Both the position numbers and the translations under genes were made by a program. 64,000 nt of DNA from Chlorokybus atmophyticus (taxonomy: Eukaryota > Plantae > Mesostigma and Chlorokybus algae), in NCBI GenBank assembly GCA_009103225.1, contig RHPI01002888.1:205986-269985 (forward strand), read 5' to 3'. The number at the start of each line of letters is the position of its first letter. The stretch's first letter is position 1. Below the pieces are notes generated by a model. The model had not been told where the DNA came from. It made no database searches and saw only the letters and a list, made by a program, of their open reading frames with translations. This document shows, piece after piece, positions 62 to 62,605 of this stretch.

Positions 62-726
62 CACAACTGTCTTTGTAAATAAAGCCGTTCAGCGTTTGAA
101 ACGCTGCTGCGTTTCAAACGCTCAACGTCTTCAATGGTACAGTCGTACCACTAAAATAGTACGACAGCACCGTTGTACCATTGAATGATGAGTACCGTTT
201 AGGGTACTTTGTTGGGACTGTTGTACCATCGCAATGGTACTATTGTTCCATTATATGTGCCGAGTATAACTAACCGGACTGACAGGTGCTAGCCGCCATC
301 GCTCGTCCCTCTTAGAAGACTTAGTTGAGATTGAGTGGTCGCTTGCTTGCCAATGTAGGTTAGTCGCCACCGCGGCTTATGTACGGCCGACAGCCGGCCG
401 CGGGTCAACTCCGACTTACTGGTATCGACCGCCGCTTTTAGGGGCCTGTATATACACTTAATTGCCATTACAGGTAGGTCGACGTTACGGAAGCAGTATG
501 ACCGGCGGCCGGCCGTCAAAATATGTTGATGTCACGTCATCACCGGTAGGCAACAGTCCACTGTACTGTACGATCGGCGGTCGGCAATTCATTATTGTCC
601 ACAATACGCACCGGCAGCTTATTCGGTCCCTTTGTGGCCCAAGTCGTTAGGTCCGTTAGGGTCCGATAGGGTCAGGCAACCAACAGTCCCTCAGTCTCTC
701 GTCAGTCACCGTGTAAAATTTGCGAC

Positions 727-1070
727 ATTAGACCTTTCGCCAATAACTCAATGATCTGCTTTTCCATTTCTTCCCTCTCTACAGGACTTAGCCTGTAGGT
801 AGGTCGTGAAGGAGGGACAGAATCTGCTTCAATAGAAATGGTATGACCAATACCTCTATCCAGTGGTAGTTCCGAAAAAGCGTCAGCAAACACATCATTG
901 AATGTGTTCACCACTTGTTGCATTTCAGGTATGGCAGTTACAACATCGCTGGTGGCATCAGAAGATGCGCGTACATGAGCCAAAAAGGCCATTGATTCGT
1001 GCTTGCGATACACACGTTTGGCTTGCAGAGCATTCAAAAGCCCTGTAGGCTCAAGCAAGGCTCGTCGCAA
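727..1070 (-). pseudogene. Gypsy pol fragment: protease-RT linker and first RT residues, cut off after LLAKGL
   Basis: FNDVFADAFSELPLDRGIGHTISIEADSVPPSRPTYRLSPVEREEMEKQIIELLAKGL matches the typical Ty3/gypsy motif (F.DVF...LP..R...H.I......P.....YR.S..E...). Confidence 0.85.
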
Positions 1071-1149
1071 TTTTGTGGTGAGCGTAATTCTATGCTTACC
1101 TTTGCGTACAGATTATGTTTTCGCATACGTGTCTAGAGTTAGATGCACA

Positions 1150-16328: not shown

Positions 16329-18875
16329 TTACCGCAACTTGGCATCATACAAAACCGCTCGCGCTCGCTGCTCCACCTCTGCGGACGCAATGGAGCTCAG
16401 CAGGGTAATGTTGTGCACAGAAACTGCAAGCAATCACGAAGGTGCAATCACCAACCTGCGAGATACTCTGCCAGCACCTTCTGCGTGTATGAACCAGAAG
16501 CCTGCCACAATTGTCCAGAGTCACACGGCTGTGCACTTGGACAACCAAAACCTTGCACATCGTGTTATATTTGGGCTAATCTATTGACTTGTTTGACAAA
16601 TGTCAGATTGATGAACAAAACTCGCAATAAGCTGTCCGGGTATGAGTAGCCATGTATGTGTCCGTGCACATACACGTGTACATCAGCCTGCATGGATGCA
16701 TGCATGCAGCACACATGAGATTGTACACACTGCCAACCACAAGACACCGACCATCACCTGTGGCAGCACCAGTTCTTTCTTGGCCTGCAGCGCAGCAAAG
16801 AAGCCCTCCTCATTTTCCTTTGTCAACCGTTGTTGTAGCAGCGAGTCCCATTGGCTCTCATCAGCTGCATGCCACACAGCAGCATGACAAATGAGCACCA
16901 AGAGGAAGGAGCGTGTAAAGAACCCACAGAATTTGGCTCATAATATTTACAGTTTGTGTCACGCACCTTGCAACACCTCATCTAACAGCGCAGCAGTTGA
17001 TTGCTCGCCACTGGCCACATCTGCACGCAGCGCATATTAATGGCCTCTACTGTATGCTCACTATGTTGCCAGAAACCAAACTGGTTGCAAGGAATGACAT
17101 GCAAGCATTAGAACAATGGACGCAACACTGCTCAACACCCGTGAATGCGCTGTATGAGGTGACCAAGACTGCCGCATCATCCGGCCAACCGCAACCACGC
17201 AACCACTTGCACAAGCAAGCAAGGAGTAGATAGACGCACCTGTAGCCGCCAGCATGCGACTGGCATACAACTGCAGAAAGGTCTGGAAGATGGCCACCAT
17301 ACCCGTCAACCCATCATCATTGGCCTGCAATCAGCACACGCTGCTACTGTTTGTGCATCGGCGCCAGTTGCCAAAACCCAAGAATGACTGTTGTGCGATA
17401 TACCGCAGACCAACAGCTTGACACACCTTTCTCATCCATGCCATTGCGTTGGACAAAAGGCCCTCATCTAAGTACTGTGCCCTTTGTTCCATGGCCTGCA
17501 GTACACAACATTTTTGAGGAGTCCTTCAAACCATAGGAGTCCTCCAAACAATAGGAGTCCTCCAAACAATACCTGCTGCTTTGTAAAACTGCTAGACCAC
17601 AAGGAGTACCTTCTTCATGCTTTTGGTCTGCTCCGCAGTCAAAGGCACAGAAAACTCTCCCGTGTCCTTGTCTGCAGCCGCAGCCAGAATCTCTTGCAAC
17701 ACTTGTGCAGAGAAGCCCATCTCAATCTGCGTCAGGAACACACAGCTTAACAAACTGCAATGCACACACGCTTGCCAGCACCTGCGCAAACAATGCGACA
17801 CACAATCGCACGCATGCACGCTAACACGCGCGCGGGCACCCACATGTGCACTCACACAAGTGCAATTAAGTACAGGAGCATTTTATCTTTTGTACTTGAT
17901 TTTCCAGGTATACGTGCACAGTTATTATGCATCTTTGTACCTTGGCCTGCTTGACAAGCGTATCGACAGTGCGCATGACAGAAGCTGCGAGCTCCGAGAG
18001 TTCATCCTTTACTTGTACATCGGTGGAAGTCTCCGCGCGGGTCGCAATGCGCAACCAAAAGGTGCGATCAAAACTGAGCAAGTTCTTTGCAACGAGCGTA
18101 ACCCTCTGCACAGAACCTGGAAGCGATAAATACACAATGAATGCCTGCACAGGCACGAGACCGCACGCACACATACAAACGCAACACAGGGATATGCCAT
18201 GCAATAGCGTTGGTTTCAAACTGCAGAACATGCTTGCTGTTACCTCAGACTCACTGGCGCCGCGCAAAGCATCTATCAACTTGTCTTGCTCCAATGTTGC
18301 ATTAAGCGCAGAGGCAGGATCCTCTGGAATAGAAGCGCGCACGGTGGCCCTGCACATCAGTAATGATGATGGTGATTTATAATGATCAACAAGGCAGCTA
18401 CTTTGTTCTCGCCCTAAGCCCCACACACATTCTATGCACGTTGCTCAATGCATGAAGAAATGAAGGTTTATCAACAATAATTGTTGACGTTGTGAAAGCG
18501 TGTACAGTCCCCTTCAGCTCCCCTTCAGCATGCAAGCATGTAGACACGTCCACATTCCCACATTGCACTGAAAACGAAGTAGTTTATGCGCACTGCACAA
18601 CGATGACTGTGAATGCTGTCTACGCTGCGTGGTAGTCGAACACAATGCTCCTCAAAGTTACCAGACACACACCGGCCACAGCGTGTCCACCTGCTTCGCC
18701 GCCGACCCACTGCATTTAACTTTACTCCGCCCACAGCTCCACCTTGTCGCCATTGGCGGACACCGGACGGCGCCGCAGCATTCGCAGGCAGAGAACCACG
18801 CAACCTCGCCTCAGGCTTCAACGCTGACAGCCCGCCCACCACGCCCGCCGCCGCCGCCGCCGCCGCCAACCCCAT
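16329..18875 (-). CDS. PRDA1: Plastid-targeted helical protein, PRDA1 (PEP-related development arrested 1)-like; multi-exon
   Basis: Ala/Arg-rich transit-like N-terminus ending RRRSRATVRA; QDKLIDALRGASESE, KNLLSFDRTFWLRIATRAET, GMVAIFQTFLQLYASRML, SGSYTQKVLAEYLAEVEQRA resemble recalled PRDA1 blocks (NVLAFNEGFWIRLAAR, LQKVLQLYA, GSYQQRILIEYL). Family call from memory. Confidence 0.65.
17518..17571. repeat. Three tandem copies of an 18-bp unit (ggagtcctccaaacaata), intronic
   Basis: Read directly; first copy has two mismatches. Confidence 0.85.
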
Positions 18876-19164
18876 GCTGCGCGCAAAGTTGCCACCACTA
18901 ACCCTAATTCCAACCCTGGAGGATTTACAAATTCCAAACAAAGCCTTGAATAGCAGAGTGGGACCAGAGGGAGAATTGCTGTGCCGTTTCTTTGCGCGGT
19001 TGTCCCGAAAGTACAAAATTACGAAATTGTGTGCCTGCGGCTAGTTGGGGTTTGGGCGTTGGCGACAGCGACGGTGGCGGTATGGGCGGTGTCGTCGGCG
19101 TTGTTGGTATGGATACGCGCTGTAACTAGTAGTTGGGCATGAGTTGGGCTAGATTATTTTGCTG

Positions 19165-22100
19165 ATGGCGGCGGCCGCCGCGTCAACGGCGTCAGAGTCA
19201 CGGCCGCCGCAGTGCATGGTAGGGGTGCGGCAGGGCCAGTCTCTGGATGGACGGCTTGCAATTTGCCTGTAGCAAGCATTCACATGACGTAGCAATTGAT
19301 GGCGTGTTAGCACTCTTATTCTGTTCTTGATTTCAGAAACGCTGTCAATACACTGCCTCTGTCGCATGAACATCAAGATGATGCTGGCCACAAAACTCTT
19401 TGTAGCTAGGCCAGTCAGGCCGACGAGCACACTCGCTGGCGTAACGCTCTCGTAGTCACGGGTTGTTATCTCACCAGGGTTTGTTGGTACGCATCAGTAG
19501 GTCTTTGTGTCCTCTAAACATACGCAAGCCGAAGCTTCTTGTCTTCGGTATGTAGCGTTTATATATAAAGTCGTTCTGGTTTACGCAAGGCAGGCTGACA
19601 GGTCCATTGTTGTTGACCTGATGTTAGTCCGGGCAGATTGCGTTGGCTCACATTGTCACTGTGAAACAGTGGTGGCACTGCGAAAGAAGTACTTAATCAG
19701 TGCAAACGAGCGTGTGCGTTTATGGCACTGTGAAACCAATGCTTAGTGTTGTGTTGGTCACAAAAGCAAGGAGCATATGGAGCATACCGGTTATGTCCAG
19801 AAGAGCGTGCAAGACTTGCACGAGAAGCCTTTGATGCTAGCAGAAGGCGCCGGTTGCTTCAGGTGTGTAGGCTGCCTTTCCAAGAGTGTGCAACTTGCGA
19901 CAATTACGTCTGGTTGTGTGTTAATCGGTTATGTACAACTACTAATGGAGTGTTGTCTGTTTGGGTTATCAGGTTCGCGCACAAGACAAGCTGCATGCAG
20001 CGCAGAAGAGGCGTGCGTATCAGGATAACTTGCGCCAAGTTCAGGAGCAGCTCATTCAAGCATTAAAGGTACCTTAAATGATGCGTGGGACATTGTGCTT
20101 GCTTGCTTGCTGAGGGCTTCATTGTCATCTTACTTTTGGTGGCAGGAACAATGGGGCCAAGATCAAGCTGGGAAGGTTGCTGCTCTCAATCAGAAGTATC
20201 AGTGGGCTTTGGGAACTATTGGTGAAGCACACAGAGATGCCGGAGATGAGAGAGACCTTGCTGTATGTGACGCATACCTGCCAACCTACATGGGCACAAC
20301 TGTCCGTTGATAGGCGTACCTTAGCTTTTGGCACACAGGCACACACAAACATGCGGGCACATGTGTGCATGCGCACGTGCACGCACAAACAATAGTATCA
20401 TTGCAGGCTAAGGCAGCTGCGGAACAAGCTGAGGCTGCAGTGCTGTACCAAATACGCGAACAGCAGCGCTTTCAGCTTGCCATTCAGGAGGTCAGTCTTG
20501 TATAAGTGCAGGTGTTGATTGGACTTCTTTAGGGCTTTGTATGCTGTATGCCCACACCGCACTGTGCAGGATGAGCAAGCGCAGATCGCCGCTGAACAGA
20601 AAAAGCTGCTTGAAGCGCAGAAAGTTCAGACAGCCCTGCAACGCGCAGCAGAGCAGCGGGAACTGTTACTGCTGCGCATGAACAAAATAAAGCGGGAAAT
20701 GGAGGAACAGGAGCTGGAGAAGGAGAAGCACAAGGTCCGCAAGCACTGTTGTTGTCACAGCGTATGTATTACACTGCTCACCAGTGAAGCACACACCAAT
20801 GCTACACACAGTGTATGAGAGCCATGCACGCTGTTGTCACAGAGTGTGCTACGCATGCACTGTATACTGCACTGACTGCTGACGTTAGGGTTATATCTTT
20901 GTTGGTATGGCTGCAGGAGGAAGTAGTGGCAGCCGTGACAGCCGAGAACATGAGACCCGCAAGGAGCGCGCGGCAGGTGGCTGGCAGAGAGCTTCTGAGG
21001 TCCGTACTGGAGGGTGAGAGGGCCGCTGCAATGCGCAAAGAGAGCGAGCTGAGGGCTCAAGAGCGCGCCTTTGCAGCAGAGCTGAGGCTGAGAGTGGAGA
21101 AGGTGGATGAGAATGCTATGTGTCACATGTCTCAGGCACAAAGCATGTCTTGCTGACTTTTGAATGGCCACTGGACAGGCACGCAAGGACATGCAGCAGG
21201 AGCTTGAGAGAGCAGCACGCGAGTCACGTCAGGCACGTGTGCGGGCATTGAGCAGGCCTGAGCACCCTGAAGCAGCCGCTGATCCATCCCAAGGTATGCA
21301 GAGCTACATTGGTGTTTGCTAACGAACGCCATAACACGAGCTCTCTCAATAGTTCCCCAAAGCAGATATGTGCATATGCTCTTGTTTTTGAAGTTTTGCT
21401 TGCAATACTGGGGTTGAAGCGCGGCATGGGTAGGCTGTCAATTTCAAGCAGTAGGTGTCAGTTTCATTCACATACAATATGTTTGAAATTGTGGGTGGGA
21501 GAAGGGGGGGGGAGGGGACCACAGCACGCAACACGTCTTTCCACATCTGACAGGCTTGCAGCGTCCACATCGAGTGAGGTTCCAGGAGGACCCGCAGCGA
21601 GGCACTCCAGAGAAGCTTTCAGAAAGGCCGGCTGCCACGACGCAATCCGCGACGCAGACGAGCCATGAGTTCAGCCAGCTGGAAACGGGCGAGATTGAAG
21701 CGGGAGTTCAGGTCGATGAGGACTTTCCATGTTCCTCGCAAGCCAATGAGATTGAGGGCATGCAAAACAGCCCCGTCCAACGGGCAAAGGTCGGACCACC
21801 CCCCTCATGCAGTTCACACACAGCTCTACACTGAATGTGGTTCAATGTGGAGTACCTCACATGACAATTTTCCTGCTTTTCGCCTGCAGAAACCGCTCTC
21901 ACCCATGCCAGAGCAGTCTCTTGACGCGCTGGAGAGGCTGTCGCTGTCGTCATCCTCCGGCATCAGCAGTCTCTGGGGCTCCGATTTGCAAGCGTTGCGC
22001 GAGGAGCTGGAATGGGAATACGGGATCATTGGCAAAGAGGTACGACACAGTCACGGTGCTCTGGTTCAGCAGAGCTTTCTTTGCAGCCATGCAGTGGCTC

Positions 22101-24298
22101 TCAGAGTCACAACATTGGTGTTGCGCAGCACGTGTCTGTGGATGGTGATGTGCATGCCGCGGCAGCGGCTGCCGCAGCTGTCACAGCGGCTGCAGTGGCT
22201 GAAGCAGAGAGATACGCACAGAAACAACGGCAAGGTACCGATGACATGGCCATAACATACCTGTAGCTCACAGACAAAGCTTGACACATTACAGGCCTAC
22301 CAAAGCTGCTATGTGCATGGGGGTATCCTTACTAGTGTGTAACCCTTTTTACAGACCAAAGCCTACATGTGCATCATATTGGCAGTCAAGAGGCTGCACT
22401 GCCCTCCTCTCCTGCCCCGTCCTTAGGGCTGAGTTTCCCGACGCTTTCGCCCATGTCCGGCCTCTCGCCGCTGTCCAGTCTGCTGTCACCGCTCAGCTTC
22501 GGAGCACAAGAAGAACTCCCGCTTCCTTTGAAACCAAAGCACGAACGCATTGGTCCGAGTGATCGTTCTTCCTCACCACTTGAGAGGTACATCTCCAATG
22601 ATGCAACAGCATGGGCACAGGTGCAGAGACAACTGGTAGTTGTTGAGAGAGTGACATGTGATGTGGCTGGCAGGGCCTTGCATGAGGCGCACCTGGCAAC
22701 TGAGAGCATGCCGACAACATTGTCGGCATCTTCAGATGCATCACAACAAATCTCAATTGTTCCTACCACAACCACAAGCAGCGGTACATCACCAGTCACA
22801 AATCTAACCCTCAGTCTTCCAGCTACCAGCAGGTAACTGGCTTGTTGTAGCTGCCTGCTTTTTTGTGGGTATGTTGGCTCCACATCACAATAACCACTCA
22901 TCAACTCTACCTCTGTGGCAGTGTCCCAAACCTAGAGCCTGTCAATGAGGGTGAATCCCCGCTCCCGCAGCTCAAGTCGCTCGACGCCATTCTTGGAGCT
23001 ATTGCAAGGCAGGTTCAGGACCTTGATTTGCAGCTGAGGTCGTCTCCTGCAGATGGTGCTTCATCTCGCGCATTACAGACCGACCACGAGGCCAGTGGGT
23101 TTGAAGAAAGGTCTTATACTCCAAGGCCTGCAGTCAACCCAACCAGCGAGGAAGCTTCACATTCGGTGTCACCACGCACACAAAGACTATTGGAGCATGC
23201 CTTTGACAGGTTGATGGAGGAAGAGCAGAAGCCATTGTTTCAGTCTACTGAACACCCACCTCACGAAACACCTGAGGAGGGAATGCGCAGTGAGGACACA
23301 TGTGACACATCTACACTGCAAAGCGTGTCCACGTCACCTTTGCCATCCACTGAAAGTCAGCCCGCAGGCAAACAGCAGCTGACTCAAACGGAGTCAGAAG
23401 ATGTCGTGAACCAAGAAATGAAAGCAGATGAGTCAGCAGCGGTACACACAGATGCAATTCCTTCACCCGGCGTGCTGCCTGCCTCAACATCGGCACAACA
23501 ACAGGAAGAAGACTGGCTTCAGCGACTGCGAAAGGGCAAAGCAGTGGCAGTAGTTGCGGAGGACGTGACCAAAAGCGAACGGAAGTCATCATCATCTCAA
23601 TACTCTTTTGGCTCAAGCCCTCATCAGCCGCGCTCATCAGCCGCATCATCGCTGTCAGTCCATCCGTCAGAGTTCAACACCAGCCTCTCCAACATCTCCG
23701 ACATCTCCAACATACTTGAAGACTTGCCAGAGGCTTTCAGTGATATCGGGTCCCCGCGAGCCATGAATGACTGGCAGAGCCTTATGCGGGGCTCGATCTC
23801 GGACGTAGAGGGGTTCTTTGCTACCGACGTGGACACAGTGATACAAGATCTCACGGGTGTGCAACCAGAACAACCATTGTTGCATCATCATCGGCCTCAA
23901 GGCGAAGAGGCTGCGCTGACCCAAGCCGAGAGCGACGAGTACGCGGACTTGCTGGAAGCACTTCAACGCAGCATTGAAGAGTATGACATCAGCGTGTCTC
24001 TCGGCCATGTGCCCGCAAGCACGTCTCGGATGCGAGGGTCGTCCCCGCAGTCAGCGTCCCAATCCAGAGCAGGCGCACCTGCTGTGGTCAGAAGTGAGTG
24101 CGCAAGGCATGAGTCTGAACCATGGTTGATGGTGATGTGTCTGATTGATTAACAAGGAAGGTCAACCCAATCCAACCAGTATGCTCACAGCTGGCTTTTG
24201 CAGTTACTCCCAGGTTTGTGTCCAATGACGTGCCGCAGCAGGAGACTTCCAGTGCGGAACGGGCTGGTCGGCAGCAAAATAGAAGGGCTTGGCACTAG
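19165..24298 (+). CDS. CEP295: CEP295/KIAA1731/Ana1-like centriolar protein: N-terminal coiled-coil domain plus long Ser/Glu-rich disordered tail; start codon uncertain
   Basis: Exons ~19765-19862, 19973-20068, 20146-~20260 give YRLCPEERARLAREAFDASRRRRLLQVRAQDK...EQW...K...L...Y..ALGTIGEAHRDA, colinear with recalled human CEP295 RLSPNEE...RRKLRLLQVREQ...AEW...MGEGHRQA. Later coiled-coil exons and a long open exon (~22920-24090); putative TAG at 24296-24298. Confidence 0.68.
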
Positions 24299-25224
24299 GT
24301 AGATAGCCTGCTTGATTGGGGTTGGGATCCCCATTAGTCGCAGGGATTATCATACCACATTATTGCGATGACGTATGCATTGCCAAACGCGGCGTGTGCT
24401 TGGGTGAATGGTGTTGCTACATTTAACATCGAGTTACAATGCAAGGCATTTAAGCGTTCATGAGCAATGTCATACATTAGCTTTGCATGTTAGTAAAACA
24501 ATACTGAGGGGTGGCGGACGATTACACATCGGTATGAACCTGTCCCTGCTCTGGTCAACGACATTCAACACTGCAATCCTGTCTGTAGAGTGCTTCATGA
24601 ACTGAACTACGTGGTGAAGCATGCAAACCCTGTATGCACATGTACATGAGTGCATGTCGTGTGCTTTGCTAATCTACCACACCCACACCCACACCCACAC
24701 CCACGCCCACGCGCACGCGCACACACACGCCCTGTGAAATCAGGTGTGTCATTGCTACCTACATTAGCATATGGTGGCATTGTGTGTGGCATGGTAGGAG
24801 TGGGGGCTAGGTGGGACCAGGTACGTGCAATGGCACATGATATGCAATGTGTTTGATGGATGTTGATTGTTGGGTTGTACCTATACATGTGAGTGCGACT
24901 CTCTCTCGCGCTCTCTCGCTGCCACTGCGTGTGGGTGTGACACGTGTCTTGGCATACGCATTATGCGTAGCGGTGCAACCCATACTATTCTGTGTACACA
25001 CACACAGGCCACGCACGCCCAGCGTCACGCCCAGCTTGCAACAGCACAATGCAATGTATGGAGTTGAGGGAGAAACGAAGTACACAGTGTAAGCTTTGAA
25101 GTCTGTTGTGACCCATTAATGAGGCAAGTACATGGGTAAAGTGGGAGTGTATAGCTACAAGGGAAGGGGGGGTGAGCGTATGATACATAGTGGTTGTTAT
25201 TTTCAACAACAAAACGGCCAACTC

Positions 25225-26809: not shown

Positions 26810-28900
26810 GAGCGGCGGCCGTGGCTGAATCAGAGAGGCATGCACAGAAACACCGGCAAGGTACTGATGACATGGCCGTGGTATACCTGCTGCTCGCAGG
26901 CAAAATCTACCCTAAAAGCCCCACACAAGCTGCTTATGTGTGTTGAGACATCCTGACTAGTGTGTAATCCCTGTGCACAGATTAAAGCCTATTTGTGCAG
27001 CACGTTGGCAGTCAAGAGGCTGCGCTGGATTTCTCTCCTGCCCTCTCTACAGGGCTGAGTTTCCCGTCGCTGTTGCCCATGCATATGTCCCGCCTTCCTC
27101 AAGAAGCAAACAAACGAACAAGCCTAGATCGACCCAACTTTTGCACCACTCAACAACGTACATCTCCTCGACGCAACAGCATGCACACTGGTGGAGGGAT
27201 GATTGCCAATTGTTGAAAGAGTGACATGCGATGTGGTTGGGGGGCAGGGGCTTGCATAGTGCGCGCCTGGCGTCTCAGAGCGAACCGAAGAATTGTCAGC
27301 AGCATCTTCAGATGCATTGCAACAAGGCTCAATCAACCCTAACACAACCACAAGCAGCAGTCACAATCACAGGTTACAAGTCCAGCTACCAGCAGGTAAC
27401 TGGTTTGTTGTAGCAGCAGGTGACTGCCTGCTGGCTCGTGGGTATGTTGGCTCCCCATAACAACAACAACCAGTCAACAGATGTTTCTCTGTGGCAGTAT
27501 CCCAAGCTGGAGCATGTTAATAGAGGGCGAGTTCCCGGTCCCGCAGCTGAAGTCGCTCGACGCCATTCTTGAGGCCATTGCCAGGCAGGTTCAGGACCTC
27601 GACTCGCAGCCGAGGTCCTCTCGGTGCAGATGCTACTTCATCACCAGCCTTAGAGACCAACCGTGAGTGGGTCTGAGAAAAGGTCTCACACTCCAATTCA
27701 TGCAAGGTCATCTCGCTTAATGAAGTGTCAAGTCCCACATCATCATGCACAACGGCTGGAGCATGCCTTTGGTAGACTGGTGACAAGGGAGGAACATGAG
27801 CCATGTTCTTCAGGCAGCTGAACAGCCACCTCAAGACACATTTGAGAAGGGAGCTAGCAACCTGGACATGCCTGGTGCGTCCACACCTTAAAGCGCCACC
27901 TCATGTGTTAGGCGAACAACAGCTCGCTCAAACTGAGCTACAAGAACAAGTGAACCCAAACTTGAAGGCAAGTGATTAGCAGCGGTACAGGCAGATGCAC
28001 TTCTTGCACCCGGTGTGGAGCCTACCTCTCTACATCAGCAGAACAGGAAGAAGACACTGGCTTCAGCGTCTGCGAAAGGGCAAAGCGGTGGCAGTGGTAG
28101 CAGAGGATGTGCCCCAAAGCGACCAGGAGTCATCGTGGCTCCACCGCTCAGCTGCGCCCAGGCGCATCTCGCTTGCGGTCCATCCTTCTATAGTCAACAC
28201 CAACCTGTTCAACGTCTCCTAACATCCTCAAAAAACGTGCCGGAGGCGTTCAGCGGGGCTCTATGTTTGACGTGGAGGGGTTCTTGGCTACGGAGGTAGA
28301 CACGGTGATACAAGACATTGCAACCAGAAAAACTATTGTCATTGCAGCATCACTCTCGAGGCGAAGAGGCTGCGCTGACCCAAGCAGAGAGCGACGAGTA
28401 CGCGGACTTGCTGGAAGCACTTCAATGCAGTATTAAAGAGTATGACGTCAGCGTGTCTCCCGGACATGCGCCCTCAAGCACGTCTCGGATGCGACAGTTG
28501 TCCCGGCAGTCGCAGTCAATTCACGGTCAAGTGCGAGTGCGTCTGCTTCGGTCGAGAGGTGAGCGCGTGAAGACTGACTGTTAATCCTGTTGATTGTGGT
28601 GATGTGGTGATGCAATAGTCTAACAACAGAAGGTTGTGCTCACAGCTGATTCCACTACGCCAAGGTCAGTGTCCAGCGGTGTGCAGCAGCAGGACACTTC
28701 CAATACGGAGTGGTGTGATTGGCGGCTGCAGCCGTGTAGATGTGTAGGCGTGCTAGCGTGCGTGTGAGTTTACTGGTGCAGTGTGATAGGCATGGCTGAC
28801 AGTGCGTAGCTTTGTATGACGATGTTGCTGTACTATTAAACACACACAGATTGGCAGGAGCAGGAGAGCTTGGCACTAGGTATGTAGCCTGCCTAATCCA
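26810..28900 (+). pseudogene. Degenerate duplicate of the 3' half of the CEP295-like gene
   Basis: Aligns with ~22180-24330 (shared PQLKSLDAILxAIARQVQDLD, WLQRLRKGKAVAVVAEDV, GEEAALTQAESDEYADLLEALQ) but is broken into short ORFs by stops and frameshifts; no 5' coiled-coil exons. Confidence 0.8.
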
Positions 28901-29183: not shown

Positions 29184-30548
29184 TCAGCTATTGGTTGTGT
29201 CGGCAGCAGACAGCAGAGCCTTCTGCTGCGCATCCTTAAACTTAATCTGCTCTGCCACACGCGTATGGAAGCCGATGGTGGGCTCGTACTTTGACACAGC
29301 ACAGACTACCTGCACAATACAACGTGGCAATTGTCATCAATTGTCGTAAGCAACATGCAAGCAGTATGTATGACCCACCACAAGTGAAAATGGAAAAACA
29401 CACACATTTTGTGTTACACTTTTTGTTACACTATCCATAAAACTCACTATCAAAGTCGAGTGCATACCTCCAGAAACACGAAGTAAGGCGCCATCAGGAA
29501 TGATTGCACGAAGTTGTCAATCAATGCCGGCCGGCGACCCTGCGAGTATTGACCCACATGCATGTCTTTATTGCAATGAATACAGGGTCAAACTAACATG
29601 CCTGCAATGCGGGCACATGCAACATACCTCAAAGACGCCGTGCCCAATGAACTGAGCTATCCAACACAACACATTGACTCCAAGTGCTACCTGCAGGGTA
29701 TCGCAAACAACTGGTGGTGAGTCAGCAGAGAAGCAACTACAAACATTGAGAGCGAACAAAGAAAACAACAATGTAAGAGCAATGCGAGTGCACAACCAGA
29801 GGACGCAACAGAGCCAAGTCTCAAGAAGAGAGACAAAAAGAAACCAACAAAAGTCGATTGAATCAAGCAAGTGAACAAGTAAATAAGCAGCAAGCAGCCA
29901 CACACACACACACAGCGCGAGCGCGAGCGCGAGAGCGAGAGCGAGAGCGAGCGAGCGCGAGCGAGCGAGTGAGCGAGAGAGCGCGCGCGAGAGAGCGAGA
30001 GCGAGAGCGCGAGAGAGCGAGAGCGAGAGCGCGAGAGCGAGAGAGCGAGAGCGAGAGCGAGAGCGAGCGAGCGAGCGAGAGCGAGAGGGAGCGAGAGAGG
30101 GCGAGAGGGCGAGAGAGGGAGAGAGGGAGAGGGAGAGAGGGAGAGGGAGAGAGGGAGAGNNNNNNNNNNNNNNNNNNNNNNNNNNNNNNNNNNNNNNNNN
30201 NNNNNNNNNNNNNNNNNNNNNNNNNNNNNNNNNNNNNNNNNNNNNNNNNNNNNNNNNNNNNNNNNNNNNNNNNNNNNNNNNNNNNNNNNNNNNNNNNNNN
30301 NNNNNNNNNNNNNNNNNNNNNNNNNNNNNNNNNNNNNNNNNNNNNNNNNNNNNNNNNNNNNNNNNNNNNNNNNNNNNNNNNNNNNNNNNNNNNNNNNNNN
30401 NNNNNNNNNNNNNNNNNNNNNNNNNNNNNNNNNNNNNNNNNNNNNNNNNNNNNNNNNNNNNNNNNNNNNNNNNNNNNNNNNNNNNNNNNNNNNNNNNNNN
30501 NNNNNNNNNNNNNNNNNNNNNNNNNNNNNNNNNNNNNNNNNNNNNNNN

Positions 30549-30608
<60 letters not shown>

Positions 30609-31449
30609 AGCAGGTGAGCAAACAAGTTGCTTGCCTTCCATGCGAGGCTTCTGCCGAGGAAATCGACAGCGACGCGTGCTGCGACGCAGAGAGCGAGGAC
30701 GAACCACCCTGCGAGCCAGCCGAGCTTGCGGTCAAGGAGGGTGTAGTAGATGGTGTACACGAGGGACACCAGCAGCGCCGCGTCCACCACCGTGACGTAC
30801 GCGTATATTAAATGCACTGATGGCGGAGCGGATGGGGGAGCAGGGATGGGGCCCGCTATTCGTGGCACGCATGTCAACAGCACCTGCAAGTAAACGTGTT
30901 GGATGGGAAAGCGCACGCATGTGTACACACACGGGCATACACACACGCACGCAAAAGTGGGACAATGCGCGTGGAGATTGCACTTCCTATGCACGCATGT
31001 GAGGAGTGAGTGATGATGGTGCTTGCTACGTGTGAAAATGTAACAGTGCACTGGACATGCATGACTTGAGCGATGCCGGGCAGCATGCACTTAAGAGTTG
31101 TGATGATACGGGCATGCGTGTACTTGTGAGTTGCAAGTATGCTTCATGTATGCATGCACAAGGTCAGCAAAGTGGTGACCTTTTCTGATCGATATTTTCA
31201 GCTAGGCGCGTACATACAAATAAGGGACGTGTGTCTTCAATGTCGGAATCATGGTGAAACTTCACACTCGCGTACCTGAGCAGTAAACAGAATGGGCCAC
31301 ACGCACAAGATGTGGATGGCCTTGTTGAGCCCGTCCCGATGGTAGAACGCGTAAAAGCCGTAATGAGACTCCAAATCCAGCAGCGAAGCCTTTCGGCCAC
31401 TTGGCGAGGCCATTTCTTTCCTCTCAGCACTGGCCCTGTTTGATGACAT
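29184..31449 (-). CDS. MPO1: MPO1/YGL010w (DUF962) 2-hydroxy fatty acid dioxygenase-like membrane protein; multi-exon
   Basis: LDLESHYGFYAFYHRDGLNKAIHILCVWPILF, YYTLLDRKLGWLAG, CWIAQFIGHGVFE, GRRPALIDNFVQSFLMAPYFVFLE, KYEPTIGFHTRV. Alternative start at 31413. Confidence 0.88.
29905..30605. repeat. (GA)n/(GAGC)n microsatellite around an assembly gap (N 30160-30548), intronic
   Basis: Read directly. Confidence 0.9.
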
Positions 31450-39536: not shown

Positions 39537-39625
39537 NNNNNNNNNNNNNNNNNNNNNNNNNNNNNNNNNNNNNNNNNNNNNNNNNNNNNNNNNNNNNNNN
39601 NNNNNNNNNNNNNNNNNNNNNNNNN

Positions 39626-46098: not shown

Positions 46099-48265
46099 TT
46101 ATGGACTATGTAATGGTACACATCCCCTCCAATAGCTGACGGGAATTAGCAGGTTTCGCCACTCACCGAATGGACGACCTCCGGTGCAACCTGTCTAGCC
46201 TCTGGCGGAATCCGAAACGGCGAACCCCACGCGTTGCACCGCTATCACTGGCAACGGTGACCGTGCTAGCACGTGACGTGACCATGCAAGCTATGAGCGC
46301 TGCAACGGTCATGTCCCTGGTGTTACTTGCTTGCGTCAGAATGTGGCCACCGTACGAGAGACCTGGATTCGCCCCATACTGTTGGCGCAAATTGCGGAGC
46401 CTGCTATTATCTCAAATGGTCACGTTTGTACAACAGTCAACTCAATAACATGATGGGACCTTGAACCACCCATGTCTCGGTACATGTACCGTAGCCTACA
46501 GTGTGTAGATAGGCCTGATTGGTTTGATGCGACTTACAATTGCAACTGAAGCGCTTGTCGGCGCAGCTTTTGTCTCCACTGGCGGGTTGTCACCTTTGGC
46601 GTCACGCGCGTAATTGCCTATCGGTCGGGACATCGCATGCTGACCGGCATTGCTACCCTGCTCAGGCCGGGATTGTGCTGCCAGTAAGGCTGGCAGATTT
46701 CGTACGTGGCCGAATGATGAACTGGGCCTTTGTCTGGCGTGATGATTGTGATGGTTGTTTGGGACCAAAATAGTCAAAAAGTGTATCAGATCGTACAGCC
46801 GTGACAGCCGTGGAATATTTTCTTTTCTGCATAGAACAGCTGTTAGGGCTAGCGGATCTAAATGTGAGCGACTGCGGCATGGAGGGAAGTAACAATTCAA
46901 ATTATGTTCCCTGTTCCCATTTGCTGCTCATAATCTAGTGTCAAGCGGTCGTTTTCCCTTACCCATGTTCCGGGATTGGATAGGCTATGCCAAAAAGAGC
47001 GTCATGATGAGCGCACACAGCGGCGCATCACACTTGTGTGTTTGTGCGTGTGTCACGCAGATGCAGGCACAAACACACTGTGTCACACGGTGTGACACAC
47101 ACGTGTGTGGGTACATCTTTGTGACTAGCATGCACGCAAGCAGTAGGGCCACACGTAGTCGGGCCGTGTACAGGCACGGGGTTGGCCACCTGTGTGCACC
47201 GAGAGGGACTAGGCCTTCAACCTTTTTCAATTGACAAGACCCTTGAGCACTTGTCTAGCTCAGCGCCATCATGCATGTCAATTGCTTCAAGACATTCATG
47301 CATTCATGCGCGGTACTTCTTGTTTGCCTGGCCAGTCACATCAGTGCATGCATCAACCGCACCAGTCTTGTCCCAAAAGCTCAATCTATCCTCGCATTGT
47401 GTACACTATTATCCATAAACAGCCCGCTTCAGCCCTCTTGCTCTCTCAAGGCATGCACATAGGCCTGTGGGTTTGTCGTAGGATAGATAGTGTACCGGAA
47501 AAGAGGTGTAAGCGGCGGCAATGTGTACGCTAGCGCTGTGGATTGACGAGTTGGGGGGAGGCATTGTAGTCTAGAAAGGGAGAGAGAGAGTGTGAGGAAG
47601 CGAGGGGAAGGAGTTGTCTTGTGTTGGGTGGGAGGCCTTGGGTTAGGCCACGTGGAGGTACAACCTGCTGCAGACGGCAGTGGGCGGCGGCAGTGGGTAA
47701 CAGGTGCGTGCGTGCATGTGTGTGTAGCATTGAGGGAGTCAAGAAGGTGCTGCTGTGCGTCGCCATTGTGCGTCGTCGCGTGCATACATGCGATTTTGCA
47801 ATATAGGAACAGAACAGCTTGTCAAGCACTCGCCAATTAGGCATTCTATCACACCTGTAGACTAAGGTTTGGACCCGACACTACCCGGTGTGGGTGGGTG
47901 TGTGGGGGAGAGAGGGGGGNNNNNNNNNNNNNNNNNNNNNNNNNNNNNNNNNNNNNNNNNNNNNNNNNNNNNNNNNNNNNNNNNNNNNNNNNNNNNNNNN
48001 NNNNNNNNNNNNNNNNNNNNNNNNNNNNNNNNNNNNNNNNNNNNNNNNNNNNNNNNNNNNNNNNNNNNNNNNNNNNNNNNNNNNNNNNNNNNNNNNNNNN
48101 NNNNNNNNNNNNNNNNNNNNNNNNNNNCGCACACACCGTGCTATAGTTCTTGTTGACACAAGTGCATGCATAGAACATGCCCAACCCACTTCGCACACGC
48201 CTCACTTGCAGCTTACACTCGTCTGCAGGTTGCCGCAAGCCGCAATCTGTACACTGCACTGCACA

Positions 48266-51200
48266 ATGACACTTCGACGCCACCAAGCAACGATATCCCT
48301 TCTATCCCTCCTCTTCCTCTTCTTCACCCTCTTCGTCACCCTCACCCTCGCCCAACCCGCCAAGAGCCCCACTCCCGTCCCGACCAAATGCCCGGGATAC
48401 AACAACGCCACCCTCCAACGCTGGTCTGAGGTGAGACACACATGCAGAGGTGTACACCAGGGCACACTCACAGTCACACTCACATGCACACACGCCGACA
48501 CTCATATGCTAACGCAGCAAAGTTTGCACACGCACAATTGCATGCACGAACACGCACACACCTACACGCGCATACACTCAACACGCATGTATCTCCTCCA
48601 GCGGTTCGGCCCCCGCGCCTACTACTACTCCCGCATCACCATCCCCCCCAACACTCATCTCCTCTTCGACCTCGGTTGGTTGTGGGCGAAAGGCGGTTTA
48701 GTCATCTCTCCCGGTGCCTCGCTTATAGTGGAAGATGCGAGGGACAGCGGGATCAAGGCAGACTTCGTCGCGGTGTACGGGGCGTTGCAAGTTGGCGCCG
48801 AGAACTGTCCGTTCAGACACAAGTTCCAGTTTGTGTTGGATGGGAATGCGACGGCGCCGGAGGCGTTCGCTGGACAGAAGGTGGGGGTGGGGAGGTTGTT
48901 GTTGCTGGTGGTGGTGACGTTGTTTGTCATGGTGGTGTGTGTGTGCATGTGCGCGTTTCTGTGTGTGTGAGTGTGCATATGTGCGCGCGCAAGCGTGTAC
49001 GTGCGTCGGTATCTGAATACATGCGTCCGTGTGCGTGTGCATGTCCACCCATAAGCATGCGCGTGTGGCCATGCGTGCGCACGCATACACATACATATGC
49101 TTCTCTGCAAGCACGCGCTGGTGCATGCGTCTAGGTCTGTCTCACCCACTCCCTCTCTCACTCACTCACCCTCTCTCCCTCTCCCTCTCCCTCTCTCTCC
49201 CCTCCCAGTGTCTCGCGGTCCTCTCCGGCGGTTCCCTCGACCTCCACGGTTCCAAAGGCCTCCTCTCCCCGTACTCCCGTCTTTCAGCAACCGCTGTTGC
49301 CGGGTCAGCCAGGTTGCAGCTTGCTAACCCCATCACTGGGGTGGCGGCGGGAGACGTGGTCGTGGTGGGGAGCACGGACTATGACCCGGGACAGGCGGAA
49401 GAGGTGAGAGAGGGGGTGTTGACTGGGGTGTGGGCGTGCGTGTGTGGGTGTGCACTTGCATGATGCGCAGGCGTGTGGACGCACCCACGCCTGCGTATCA
49501 GGCTGTGACTCTGCGCGTGTGCATGTTGAAAGATAACGCGGAGGTATGCTGTTTTGTATACAGTGTATCTGACTCTTATGCACTGCACTGTGACACACAT
49601 CGCAGGTGCGCGTCACTCAAGTTATCAGCCCCACACTATTAGCCATCAAGCCTCCCCTCCAGTACCTCCACTACGGCGAGGTACCCCTCACCCCAACACG
49701 TTACACCTTCTTGTCCAACACAACATGATCCCCAAACCCACTCACACAGGTCACCTTCGGCGTGGACGAGCGCGCCTCCGTGGCCCTCCTCTCCCGCTCC
49801 ATCCGCGTCGGGGCGCCGATCGACGCAAACGAGTCGACCTTCGGCGCGCACATGATTGCGATGAAGGGGTTCGCGGCCGTGAGGGTGGAAGGGGTGGAGG
49901 TGGTGAATGGGGGCCAGGGGAATCTGATCGGGAGGTGAGAGAAAGGAGGGGGAGTTATACATGTGCGCGTACGTGCGTATGAGAGCATGTCTATGCGTGC
50001 GTGTGCATATGCGTGCGTGCGTGCGTGTGTATGGAAACACGCATGCATGCATACGCACATGCACGCGCCTGTGACCACAGATGCGCATACCTTCGTGCAT
50101 ACGTGCGCGCGTATCATCATACACGCACGTTGCACACATGCCAACACATCTCACACGACTCACACTAGCATCACTCCCACCTCTCTCAGGTACCCTTTCC
50201 ACTTCCACCTCTGCGAGTGGGCCCCCGACGGCACGTACCTCCGCGACAACTCGGTTTACCGCTCCAACTTCCGCGCCTACACCATCCACGGCACGCAGAA
50301 CGTCCTCTTGCAGCGCAACATCGCCTACCGCGCACCCGGTAAGGGAGTGATGAGATGAGTGTATACGTGTGTGTGGGGGTGTGTGTGCTGATGGTGTGGT
50401 TGTGTCTCAAAGGACATGCGTTCTTCCTGGAGGATGCGTCGGAGTTTGGGAACATCCTGGACTCAAACTTGGCGATATCGACGGTGGCGAAGACCACGGG
50501 AGCGAGGCTGGGGTCGGACTTGCCGGGGAACTCCGTCTCTGGCTTCTGGATCACGAGTGAGTGGTGTTGTGGGAGAGTGTCTGTGCGTGTGGGTTTGCTT
50601 GTGGAGTTCATGTGAGTGTGTGTGGGTGGCGAGCACCCCCCGCACACTCGGTTGCACACTTGTGTGAATGCATGCGCGTAAGTGTGTATGCGCGCATGCA
50701 TGAGTGTGGACACCGACCAACGTCAGCAAGCATGCCACGAACGATAATATATAACAACGCGTGTCACAACAGATGCCAACAACAGCTTCACGAACAACAT
50801 CGCTGCCGGCTCCGAAGGCGCCGGCTTCTGGTTCCAAGTAAGCATGTACATACATGTGCATGTTCATACATGTGCATGTTCCCCCTCACCCCCNNNNNNN
50901 NNNNNNNNNNNNNNNNNNNNNNNNNNNNNNNNNNNNNNNNNNNNNNNNNNNNNNNNNNNNNNNNACCCCCACCCCAACATTTCCCCACACCCACATTCCC
51001 CCAGGTCCGTCAATCCGTGGAGGGTCTCTCCTCCCTCTTCCCCCTCTACTCCGGCTACCAACCCAACCAGGCTCCCTGGGCCTCCTTCCGCAACAACGTC
51101 GCGCACTCCACCCTCAGGGGACTCAACCTCGAGGGGGGACTGTTCGACGACAAGGACGTCATACCGGCACCGGGAACGCCGATAAAGCACTCGTACTTGG

Positions 51201-54200
51201 GACTGATTGCACCGAGCATAGGTATGTGGACATGTGGGTGGGTGGGTGGGTGGGTATGTGGGGTGACCAACTTGGGTTTACCAACAGGGAGGCCTGTGGT
51301 GGATGGGTTCACGGCGTTTCGGTGTACTTCGGATGGGGTGTGGGGACGGCTGTTCGCGCTGGACTTGGTCAACACCGTGTGGGCTGACACCGCGGGTGAG
51401 ATGGCGTGCGTGCGTGTGTGTGTGTAATCAAGTAGTATCATCACATCATACCATAGCACATGCAGAGCACTGATGCCATACACGACTCTGAAACACAGTC
51501 TCTCTCAACTATTTGGCACACGCAGAGGGCGTCCAGATCGCTGGTCAAGGCGGCCACCCTCCCCCCGGCACCATCCAACTCATAGACTCCCTCTTCATCG
51601 GATCCACGGGGAACCCCGGCTCCCCCGTCACGCCGGACTCGACGAGACAGAGCTGGGACGCGGCGCAAGGGAGGAGCGTGGCGCCGGGGAGCAGGTTCTG
51701 GCAAGTGGGGTGGAGGATGTATGATGGACCGATGCTATTGAAGGGAGTGAGGTGAGGAGGGGGGAAGTGTGTGTGTGTATGTTTGTCTGTCTGTCACGCG
51801 CGTATGCACGCATGCAAGTGTCTGAATCACCCACAGCCACATGCGTGCGTGCGTGCGCGTGCGTGCGTGCGTGTGGGCGTTGGTGTGTCTGTGTGTACAC
51901 ATACACTCACATGTTTATAGACATGTGTATACATACACACACTCACACCTAACCCACACACATGTCTCACCACAACACCCCTCACATCCCCCCCCTTCCC
52001 CAGGTTCGACCGTTTCCTCACTCCCTCCAACGCCGCCTTCCCCTCTTCGGCGATGGGTCCCCGTTTCTACAACTCCTTCTTCATGCACACGGCCACCTCC
52101 CTCCTCGCCACCTCTTTCGGTCCCTCCATCGACAAGGTGCTGTACAACCCCGACACGTCCGGCGACGGCGGGAAGGTCACTACATTGGTCGACGTGGATG
52201 GGAGTCTGACCAACAGGGCTGGGAGTACTGTGCTACCAGCGATGTGGAAGTTCTATCAGACTGCTGCGTGTGGGGTGGATGAGAGTATGGGGATGATATG
52301 TCCACATACTTACGCGAATGGCGAAGTGACTTGTCTCGAAGCCAACTGCGCCGATGATAATCTACTCTACATGATAAGGAGTAACTTCCCTGCGAGGGAC
52401 TTGCCCAGCTACAGGGATTATACGTTGTCTTTGATGGGTGGTGGGGGAAAGTATCAGCCGATTTGGTCTGTGGGAGCGAGCTATTTGTTGTACTATCAGA
52501 AGAGGGCGCCCGCGTCGGTGATGCTGCAGTTGAACAGCGCGCAGAAAGGGGATTTTGTGGAGATCGCGATGTGTTACCCGAATGGGACGAACGTGTCGGC
52601 GGTGTACAGAGGACAGGTGGGAAAGTGTGTGTGGGGCTCTACGATGCGCATCAGCATGGGCTTTTTGTCTGTCTTGCGCTGCGCGCAGACNNNNNNNNNN
52701 NNNNNNNNNNNNNNNNNNNNNNNNNNNNNNNNNNNNNNNNNNNNNNNNNNNNNNNNNNNNNNNNNNNNNNNNNNNNNNNNNNNNNNNNNNNNNNNNNNNN
52801 NNNNNNNNNNNNNNNNNNNNNNNNNNNNNNNNNNNNNNNNNNNNNNNNNNNNNNNNNNNNNNNNNNNNNNNNNNNNNNNNNNNNNNNNNNNNNNNNNNNN
52901 NNNNNNNNNNNNNNNNNNNNNNNNNNNNNNNNNNNNNNNNNNNNNNNNNNNNNNNNNNNNNNNNNNNNNNNNNNNNNNNNNNNNNNNNNNNNNNNNNNNN
53001 NNNNNNNNNNNNNNNNNNNNNNNNNNNNNNNNCCCCCCCCCCCCCCCCCCCCCCTCTTCAACAGGGTCTCTACGCCGACGCCATCCGTTCTCCCCTGCCC
53101 CCCTCCCCTTCCCTCTCCTCCATGCGCTCCTCCAACGGCTCTTCATATGTTTATGACACCCAGCGCTCCATACTGGTAGTCCGTATCATGCAACGCGCTT
53201 CAAGGAAACTGCCCCTCTACTGGGACATGAACATGGACTTCTGTCCGAGCCAGGGGTGCGACTACGTGGTGGTCAATGTGAATCTGCCGAATAGGACGGT
53301 CGGGGAGAGTGAGCTCGACTGCTCGACGGAGGCGTATAACGCGGGGTATGGGGCGGGGAGTTTGAGGAGGGAGGATGGGTGGTTGACGACGCCAGCAAAG
53401 CCGGTGGTGAGTCAGAGTTGTGGGAGAGTTGTAGTACACGGGATAGCATGCAGGTGCACATGTGCACTTGCACGCACGTGCGCGCACGTGCGCGGTGCGT
53501 GTGCGCACGCACGCGTGCCCTCGCATGCACGCACCCGCCCGCACGCACGCATACACGCATGTTCACACGCGTATGCGCACACCCACACCCACACCCATGA
53601 GCTCACTTGTCCATCCCCCTCTGTGACCCAGGGCAAGATTTCGGTGCCGTACCAGGCTCCCTTGCGCGCGTACGCGTGCGGCGGCTTCTGCCTGTTTGTC
53701 AACGCGGGCGGGGCGGGCGCGGACGCGTTCCAGGACGACTTGGGGGCAGACTGGGTAGCAGACAGGTGAGAGAGCGAGAGAGAGAGAGACACTCGTGTGC
53801 ACACGCACGCACACAGGATGCACACGCGCAAGCATACATTCAACATTCACGTTGTTGTCTTCATCATTGTGTACGATCCATCCACAGGGGTTTCACTGGG
53901 GGATACACTACGAGCCGTAACAGCGCCGTATTCGGGGTCGAGGACGGGAGCGAGCCGGTGAGTTGCACACACACACACACACACACACAAAATGTCATAT
54001 CAATGCCAGGATGTTGGTGGTGTTGTCAATAGAGATTGTTCTGAATATGTCTGTCAGGTTTACTTCACCGCAAGGGAGGGCGGCATGTCGTACACCTTCG
54101 ATGTGCCGAACGGCAGCTACCAAGTGGGCCTACACTTTTCCGGTACGCGTGCGTGTTTATATGCATGTGCATACATGTCATTCGCCGACTGTGTGTTGAA

Positions 54201-56696: not shown

Positions 56697-62605
<5,909 letters not shown>

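Follow-up and report, generated by a model that had tools for sequence, protein, structure and literature searches.

A putative CEP295/Ana1 counterpart in the green alga Chlorokybus atmophyticus, recognized by homology to the N-terminal CR1 domain

Chlorokybus is an early-branching green (streptophyte) alga. The stretch of DNA analysed here, referred to as the window, comprises 64,000 nucleotides of C. atmophyticus and contains an expressed, spliced gene of 15 exons (19165-24298, + strand) that encodes a protein of 1020 residues. As read from the sequence, the exon lengths total 3063 nt, corresponding to 1020 codons plus the stop, with AG/GT borders and a closed frame. An earlier note on this DNA had placed a homolog of the centriole protein CEP295/Ana1 at 19765-21300; the locus was correctly found, but the interval covers exons 2 to 8 only. 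Contigs from run X1, and partly from run X2, were inspected over region 18700-24600 and contain GT..AG joints between exons 1 and 2, between exons 4 and 5, and at all later introns. Since these contigs skip introns, the two runs are considered transcript-like, and the joints thus show that the gene is expressed and spliced as modelled. The transcript contigs leave exon 3 and the exon 2-3 and exon 3-4 joints uncovered, and these two joints are based on canonical splice sites and on an exact 32-residue fit to the CEP295 family.

All exons lie on the + strand. Exon 1 (19165..19218) opens with the ATG and contributes 18 codons (MAAAAAST...QCM); its joint to the next exon is seen in a contig (19217/8 to 19766/7, GT..AG), and the frame closes with exon 2. 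The conserved domain is encoded by the following three exons. Exon 2 (19767..19862; phase 0, GT..AG) encodes the first part (YRLCPEE...RRRRLLQ), exon 3 (19973..20068; phase 0, AG/GT, 32 codons) the middle (VRAQDK...IQALK), and exon 4 (20146..20262; phase 0) the end (W..K..L..Y..L...GEAHRDA, then DERDLA), with an RNA joint from 20262 to 20407. Exons 5-8 (20407-20490, 20570-20734, 20917-21102, and 21179-21293) are charged, helical, and coiled-coil-like, and all of their joints are found in transcript contigs. A low-complexity tail rich in S, T, P, A, and Q is encoded by exons 9-13 (21554-21789, 21890-22039, 22129-22234, 22355-22586, and 22674-22832), with RNA joints and consistent frames. It continues in exon 14 (22922..24093), which is spanned by a transcript contig and contributes 390 codons of S/E/Q-rich sequence with a few hydrophobic islands. 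Exon 15 (24204..24298) ends with a TAG stop at 24296-24298, is joined to exon 14 in two runs (24093 to 24204), and is followed by a 3' UTR that extends to at least 24404. Along the protein, the domain at residues ∼24-125 (exons 2-4) gives way to ∼200 charged helical residues, and these to a disordered, Ser-, Thr-, Pro-, and Gln-rich tail of ∼690 residues.

The 3' part of the gene (22185-24258, exons 11-15) has a degenerate, frameshifted tandem copy without N-terminal exons at 26811..28709 (+ strand). The copy shows 68% identity over 2124 nt by blastn, yields tblastn pieces for exons 11-15 only, and has broken reading frames. The N-terminal exons were also sought elsewhere in the window by blastn and tblastn, and no further copy was found; the duplication is limited to the 3' part.

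CEP295 (KIAA1731) and its Drosophila counterpart Ana1 are scaffolds of the centriole wall that are required for centriole-to-centrosome conversion and elongation. The family is defined by an N-terminal conserved region, CR1, which in fly Ana1 spans aa 19-134 and has been described as 'found in all CEP295/Ana1 homologs'. A 43-aa PICA motif is located in the C-terminal part of the CEP295 family, and vertebrates carry a paralog, CEP295NL (DDC8), that consists mainly of the N-terminal domain.

In the algal gene, exons 2-4 read ...YRLCPEERARLAREAFDASRRRRLLQ in exon 2, VRAQDK...IQALK in exon 3, and EQWGQ...GTIGEAHRDAGDERDLA in exon 4, where the stretch from EQWGQ onward ends in GEAHRDAGDERDLA. The earlier note had described these exons as joining into RLLQVR, 55 residues, and GEAHRDA, with W, K, L, and Y at fixed offsets, and a direct count in the translations confirms this: exactly 55 residues separate RLLQVR from GEAHRDA, and W, K, L, and Y are at offsets 33, 40, 44, and 48. 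That note compared the arrangement with human CEP295; here it was compared with four other proteins of the family.

Family members were retrieved with a degenerate DNA pattern made from exon 4 (W, K, L, Y, and GE[A/G]HRxA at fixed spacing). The pattern had a single match in the window and none in 100 shuffles (0/100). In a metagenome collection it matched three contigs only (L001, L002, and L003), each of which encodes a CEP295-like N-terminus. All three contain ...LSPNEEAR...RRRKLRIxQ followed by VREQ..., in general form R(I/L)xQ-VREQ, ending exactly 55 residues before a G-x-x-H-R motif; this upstream part lies outside the exon 4 pattern. L002 is vertebrate-looking but appears to differ in many positions from the human CEP295 exon, and is therefore not taken to be human. 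A single matching exon and its splice borders were used from this contig, and GEGHRQA is present in that exon at the expected spot. L003 contains a complete intronless ORF of 719 codons, the first 170 residues of which retrieved three proteins: one from a snail, one derived from a transcript, and one from a fish (P0021), which is named "centrosomal protein of 295 kDa" by NCBI and UniRef. Each of these three has a precomputed match to the Pfam domain PF28375, which the protein atlas lists as CEP295NL, with clusters labelled CE295 or CEP295 N-terminal-like. The fish, snail, and transcript-derived proteins together with L003 made up the four family proteins used for comparison, and the gapless arrangement described in the earlier note holds on all four.

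The N-termini of three CEP295-family proteins outside the pattern selection were built into a profile, which was searched against the 1797 six-frame, stop-to-stop peptides of the window. Exon 4 ranked first of the 1797 (20.9 bits, profile positions 70-101, E 2.8e-5) and exon 2 second (14.5 bits for the domain and 14.6 for the whole peptide, positions 10-35, E 0.0027), while the best unrelated peptide in the window reached an E-value of 0.25. Exon 5 gave a weak, collinear fit (5.1 bits, positions 109-130, p ∼0.03), and exons 6-8 gave no signal with CEP295 profiles. Searched exon by exon with the three-protein profile, the window thus gave a specific match to exons 4 and 2 and not a generic coiled-coil hit.

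A chance resemblance between two charged coiled-coil segments rich in R, Q, E, L, and A, with motifs chosen after the fact, has to be weighed. Pairwise tblastn E-values within the window are modest, from 0.009 to 0.18, the former being that of exon 2 with the L003 ORF; exon 4 is the top match of fish P0021 within the window. A spurious 'YRLSP.E' match also comes from a retroelement fragment at 705-1112, and exon 3 alone scores no better than its own shuffles (3.5 bits, p ∼0.25). Composition-preserving shuffles of the other two exons behave differently: none of 3000 reached the score of exon 2 and none of 3000 that of exon 4, the best shuffles attaining 6.2 and 8.7 bits. The two exons that rank highest in the window also stand in the right order and at the exact spacing. 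When each exon was slid without gaps along the family proteins, the best offsets of exons 2 and 4 differed by exactly 64 on four out of four, and 64 is the combined length of exons 2 and 3. The length of exon 3 is exactly that needed by the gapless family fit, and on two of the four proteins this exon by itself also fits best at the collinear offset. Over exons 2-4, 30 of 103 residues are identical to fish P0021, and the BLOSUM62 scores of the individual exons at the collinear offsets sum to 127 (an arithmetic sum, not the score of a joined search). In this stretch the four members agree at 28 columns, and the alga retains 17 of them, including L-x-P-x-E, R..R..QVR.Q, Y, L, and G..H..A. A further correspondence is found in gene structure: the phase-0 intron that separates ...Q from VR... 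in the alga interrupts the two vertebrate-type loci L001 and L002 at this codon boundary as well; the two other introns within the algal domain are unshared with these loci. Because the profile ranks, the collinear gapless offsets, the invariant columns, and the shared intron all agree, the match reflects specific homology and not coiled-coil composition, and coincidence is a very improbable account of it. The N-terminal region of the algal protein is homologous to the N-terminal domain of CEP295/Ana1, variously named CR1, PINA, or DDC8-like and corresponding to PF28375 (CEP295NL).

Other types of searches returned no relatives. When exon 4 alone was run in a full HMMER search of 1.84 billion proteins, neither a eukaryotic relative nor the protein itself was recovered. 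Two length-filtered word searches were blank, one with the stop-free frame surrounding exon 2 (region 1-41) and one with exon 14, the latter for relatives of 215-683 aa; given the length filter, these two blanks carry little weight. Among PDB sequences exon 4 had no counterpart, and in the protein atlas it gave noise only. Single-exon and word-based searches thus fail to see the CEP295 family, for which profile methods are needed. The only matches of exon 4 at E≤0.001 among the 1.84 billion proteins were bacterial TPR proteins with the repeat 'AWALxxRGEAHRxAG', which would suggest that exon 4 is a TPR-like helix and the protein a relative of TPR repeat proteins rather than of CEP295. The bacterial scores are, however, sums over 3-13 repeats, each of which matches residues 12-34 only, and the algal protein has a single such stretch with no 34-residue periodicity and no Pfam TPR match. 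The corresponding region of the fish homolog is moreover modelled as one continuous helix (residues 12-100) and not as a hairpin. The TPR look thus appears coincidental, and the bacterial proteins were rejected as relatives of exon 4, kinship with them being hardly credible.

A Pfam search of each of the 15 exons was blank. The set searched was Pfam-A without PF28375, in which fish CEP295 is also blank, and the result is therefore uninformative with respect to the CEP295 domain. It does confirm that the ALMS motif (PF15309), which no exon matched, is missing, as the earlier note had observed. With a 420-residue profile of four animal proteins, exons 4 and 2 were the sole matches in the window, and the further animal N-terminal blocks that it covers (poly-Pro, DLxRRRQ..PxQIF, AFEDMY, and LKKLLNRI) are absent from the window. 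The 'second conserved helix' that the earlier note had seen in a later exon, exon 8, was not supported: it aligns to the expected block with 1.3 bits, a score matched by 835 of 3000 shuffles.

The resemblance to CEP295/Ana1 thus comprises the same domain (CR1/PINA/DDC8-like, PF28375) at the same position, a gapless fit over exons 2-4, and one intron position in common. In the alga the domain begins ∼24 residues past the ATG of a long, mostly coiled-coil or disordered protein, and as in CEP295/Ana1 it is followed by a coiled coil and a long disordered tail. There are also differences. With 1020 residues the algal protein is much shorter than fly Ana1 (1729), the ALMS motif of human CEP295 is absent, the other N-terminal blocks of the animal proteins were undetected, and the lineage lies outside Opisthokonta. 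The domain also links the alga to CEP295NL, after which PF28375 is named; in the atlas clusters examined, CEP295NL is listed for chordates only. Judged from its sequence, the algal protein appears to be a new, divergent member of the CEP295 family in an unexpected lineage, with homology at the domain level.

We consider the algal protein to be a putative counterpart of CEP295/Ana1, in which an N-terminal CR1 helix is combined with a scaffold at the wall of the centriole or basal body, and assign this reading a probability of roughly 70%. Exons 2-4 (residues ∼24-125), perhaps extending into exon 5, would constitute the conserved N-terminal CEP295/Ana1 helix. In the model of the fish domain (mean pLDDT 87, with a shallow underlying alignment), the long helix described above is interrupted briefly before another helix begins, so that LSPNEE caps the N-terminus of a helix of ∼90 residues. 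The CR1 helix may dock the elongated algal scaffold to the wall of a new centriole or basal body, and the coiled coil and long disordered tail could then serve as a flexible platform that stabilizes or elongates the centriole. In human CEP295, deletion of the DDC8-like domain abolishes localization to centrioles, and the ALMS motif is dispensable for centrosome formation in human cells (Tsuchiya et al. 2016). Because it is dispensable there, the ALMS motif is not taken here as defining the family. No homolog of the partner-binding blocks was detected in the alga, which makes docking on the centriole wall a likelier ancestral function than recruitment of pericentriolar material.

Orthology with CEP295/Ana1 and a role of the algal protein at the centriole are what we infer from this resemblance, and the same domain could be shared in a more limited manner. 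CR1-type helices may represent an old, portable coiled-coil docking module that in the alga belongs to a protein not orthologous to CEP295/Ana1, perhaps acting away from the centriole. A second vertebrate protein, CEP295NL/DDC8, already has the CR1 helix, and the Pfam family takes its name from this short paralog. No match to animal CEP295 was obtained beyond the first ∼100 residues, but outside CR1 conservation is poor even between the Ana1/CEP295 homologs of animals. The CR1 region of the fly protein is dispensable for Cep135 binding and microtubule association. The arrangement of the algal protein, with the domain at the extreme N-terminus and a coiled coil and long disordered tail behind it, is nevertheless that of CEP295/Ana1, and the host has centrioles and mitotic centrosomes: the zoospores of Chlorokybus are motile, and centrosomes are used when its spindle forms. 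On balance we find the sharing of a module without orthology unlikely, and favour a CEP295/Ana1 counterpart at the centriole or basal-body wall. The match spans ∼100 residues only, and the functional reading is extrapolated from it.

CEP295/Ana1 has a central part in the process by which a new centriole gains stability and competence, and has been studied in animals only. A literature search for CEP295 in plants or algae found no paper, in agreement with the earlier note, whose author knew of no such description, and no CEP295 homolog was found in Chlamydomonas (Tsuchiya et al. 2016). Outside animals, hmmsearch candidates for CEP295 have been listed for the choanoflagellate Monosiga brevicollis and the chytrid Batrachochytrium dendrobatidis (Ito et al. 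2019, eLife, Figure 1 source data). Like the algal protein these are non-animal and were detected by profile search only, which shows that the family predates animals and is easily missed by BLAST. In contrast to the algal protein both are from opisthokonts. The earlier note had suggested that a pathway characterized in animals could extend deep into eukaryotes. Since choanoflagellate and chytrid candidates were already reported, an extension to the green lineage would start from Opisthokonta as a whole rather than from animals. We found no earlier description of a CEP295-family member outside Opisthokonta, of which the algal protein would be the first, and the family probably exists in the green lineage too.

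A tentative evolutionary scenario, to which we give somewhat less than even odds, is that the ancestor shared by Opisthokonta and Archaeplastida, near the last eukaryotic common ancestor, already had a CEP295/Ana1 family defined by CR1. Docking on the wall of new centrioles and basal bodies, and stabilizing or elongating it, would have been its ancestral function, with recruitment of CEP152 and CEP192 for centrosome conversion added later in animals. Green lineages that have centrioles, Chlorokybus among them, would have kept the family, whereas in Chlamydomonas and in plants without centrioles it would have been lost or have become unrecognizable. A family member in this alga would move the origin of the family back to near the root of the eukaryotes and single out the CR1 helix as the ancient core of the protein. 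The alga would also provide a simple non-animal system for asking what the CR1 helix binds.

Sequence from one more run touches on this locus. In run X4, one contig shows 90-95% similarity to it, shares its exon 7-8 joint, and presumably derives from a sister species.

A degenerate DNA pattern taken from exon 4 of the CEP295-like gene, the exon that ends the conserved N-terminal helix (CR1), led to the metagenome contig L003. An intronless and complete ORF of 719 codons lies on the minus strand of this contig (positions 58-2217), and it contains the CEP295 N-terminal domain together with further blocks of the animal N-terminus. Its nearest named relative is a snail protein. L003 is a metagenomic transcript contig of invertebrate type, and the CEP295-like form encoded on it is short. 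In the protein atlas, an oomycete cluster (∼100 proteins of ∼163 aa) is among the nearest Pfam-less clusters to residues 1-140 of P0021, a fish protein named centrosomal protein of 295 kDa, at a score of 0.77, which is under the level that counts; at that score it is a lead to CR1-like helices in another flagellate lineage.

Exon 4 itself matches only multi-repeat TPR proteins in the database, because AALNQKYQWALGTIGEAHRDAG (window 20179-20247, residues 12-34 of the exon) is so close to the bacterial TPR repeat consensus AWALxxRGEAHRxAG. We judged this likeness to be coincidental. The LSPNEE start of CEP295 proteins is also matched, weakly and spuriously, by RPTYRLSPVEREE, which lies in a retroelement-derived frame on the minus strand (window 705-1112); the LSPNEE motif alone is therefore an unsafe criterion.

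A transcript contig from sequencing run X4 is 90–95% alike to window 21021-21247 and has an identical exon 7-8 splice, with changes from the gene at third positions and also at second positions. This contig probably comes from one of the cryptic sister species whose records carry the same organism name, and it provides an initial view of the divergence of the CEP295-like gene. Downstream, exons 11-15, which make up the gene's 3′ part, recur in tandem as a degenerate copy with frameshifts (window 26811-28709, 68% nucleotide identity). The N-terminal exons are missing from this copy, which is probably the pseudogene remnant of a partial duplication.

A pure-C run of ∼1.6 kb (about 58500-60100) and five N-runs (30160-30548, 39537-39625, 47920-48127, 50894-50964, and 52691-53032) are most likely assembly artefacts. 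A long GA/GAGA-type microsatellite (29880-30620), which reads as ERERER in every frame, adjoins an assembly gap.
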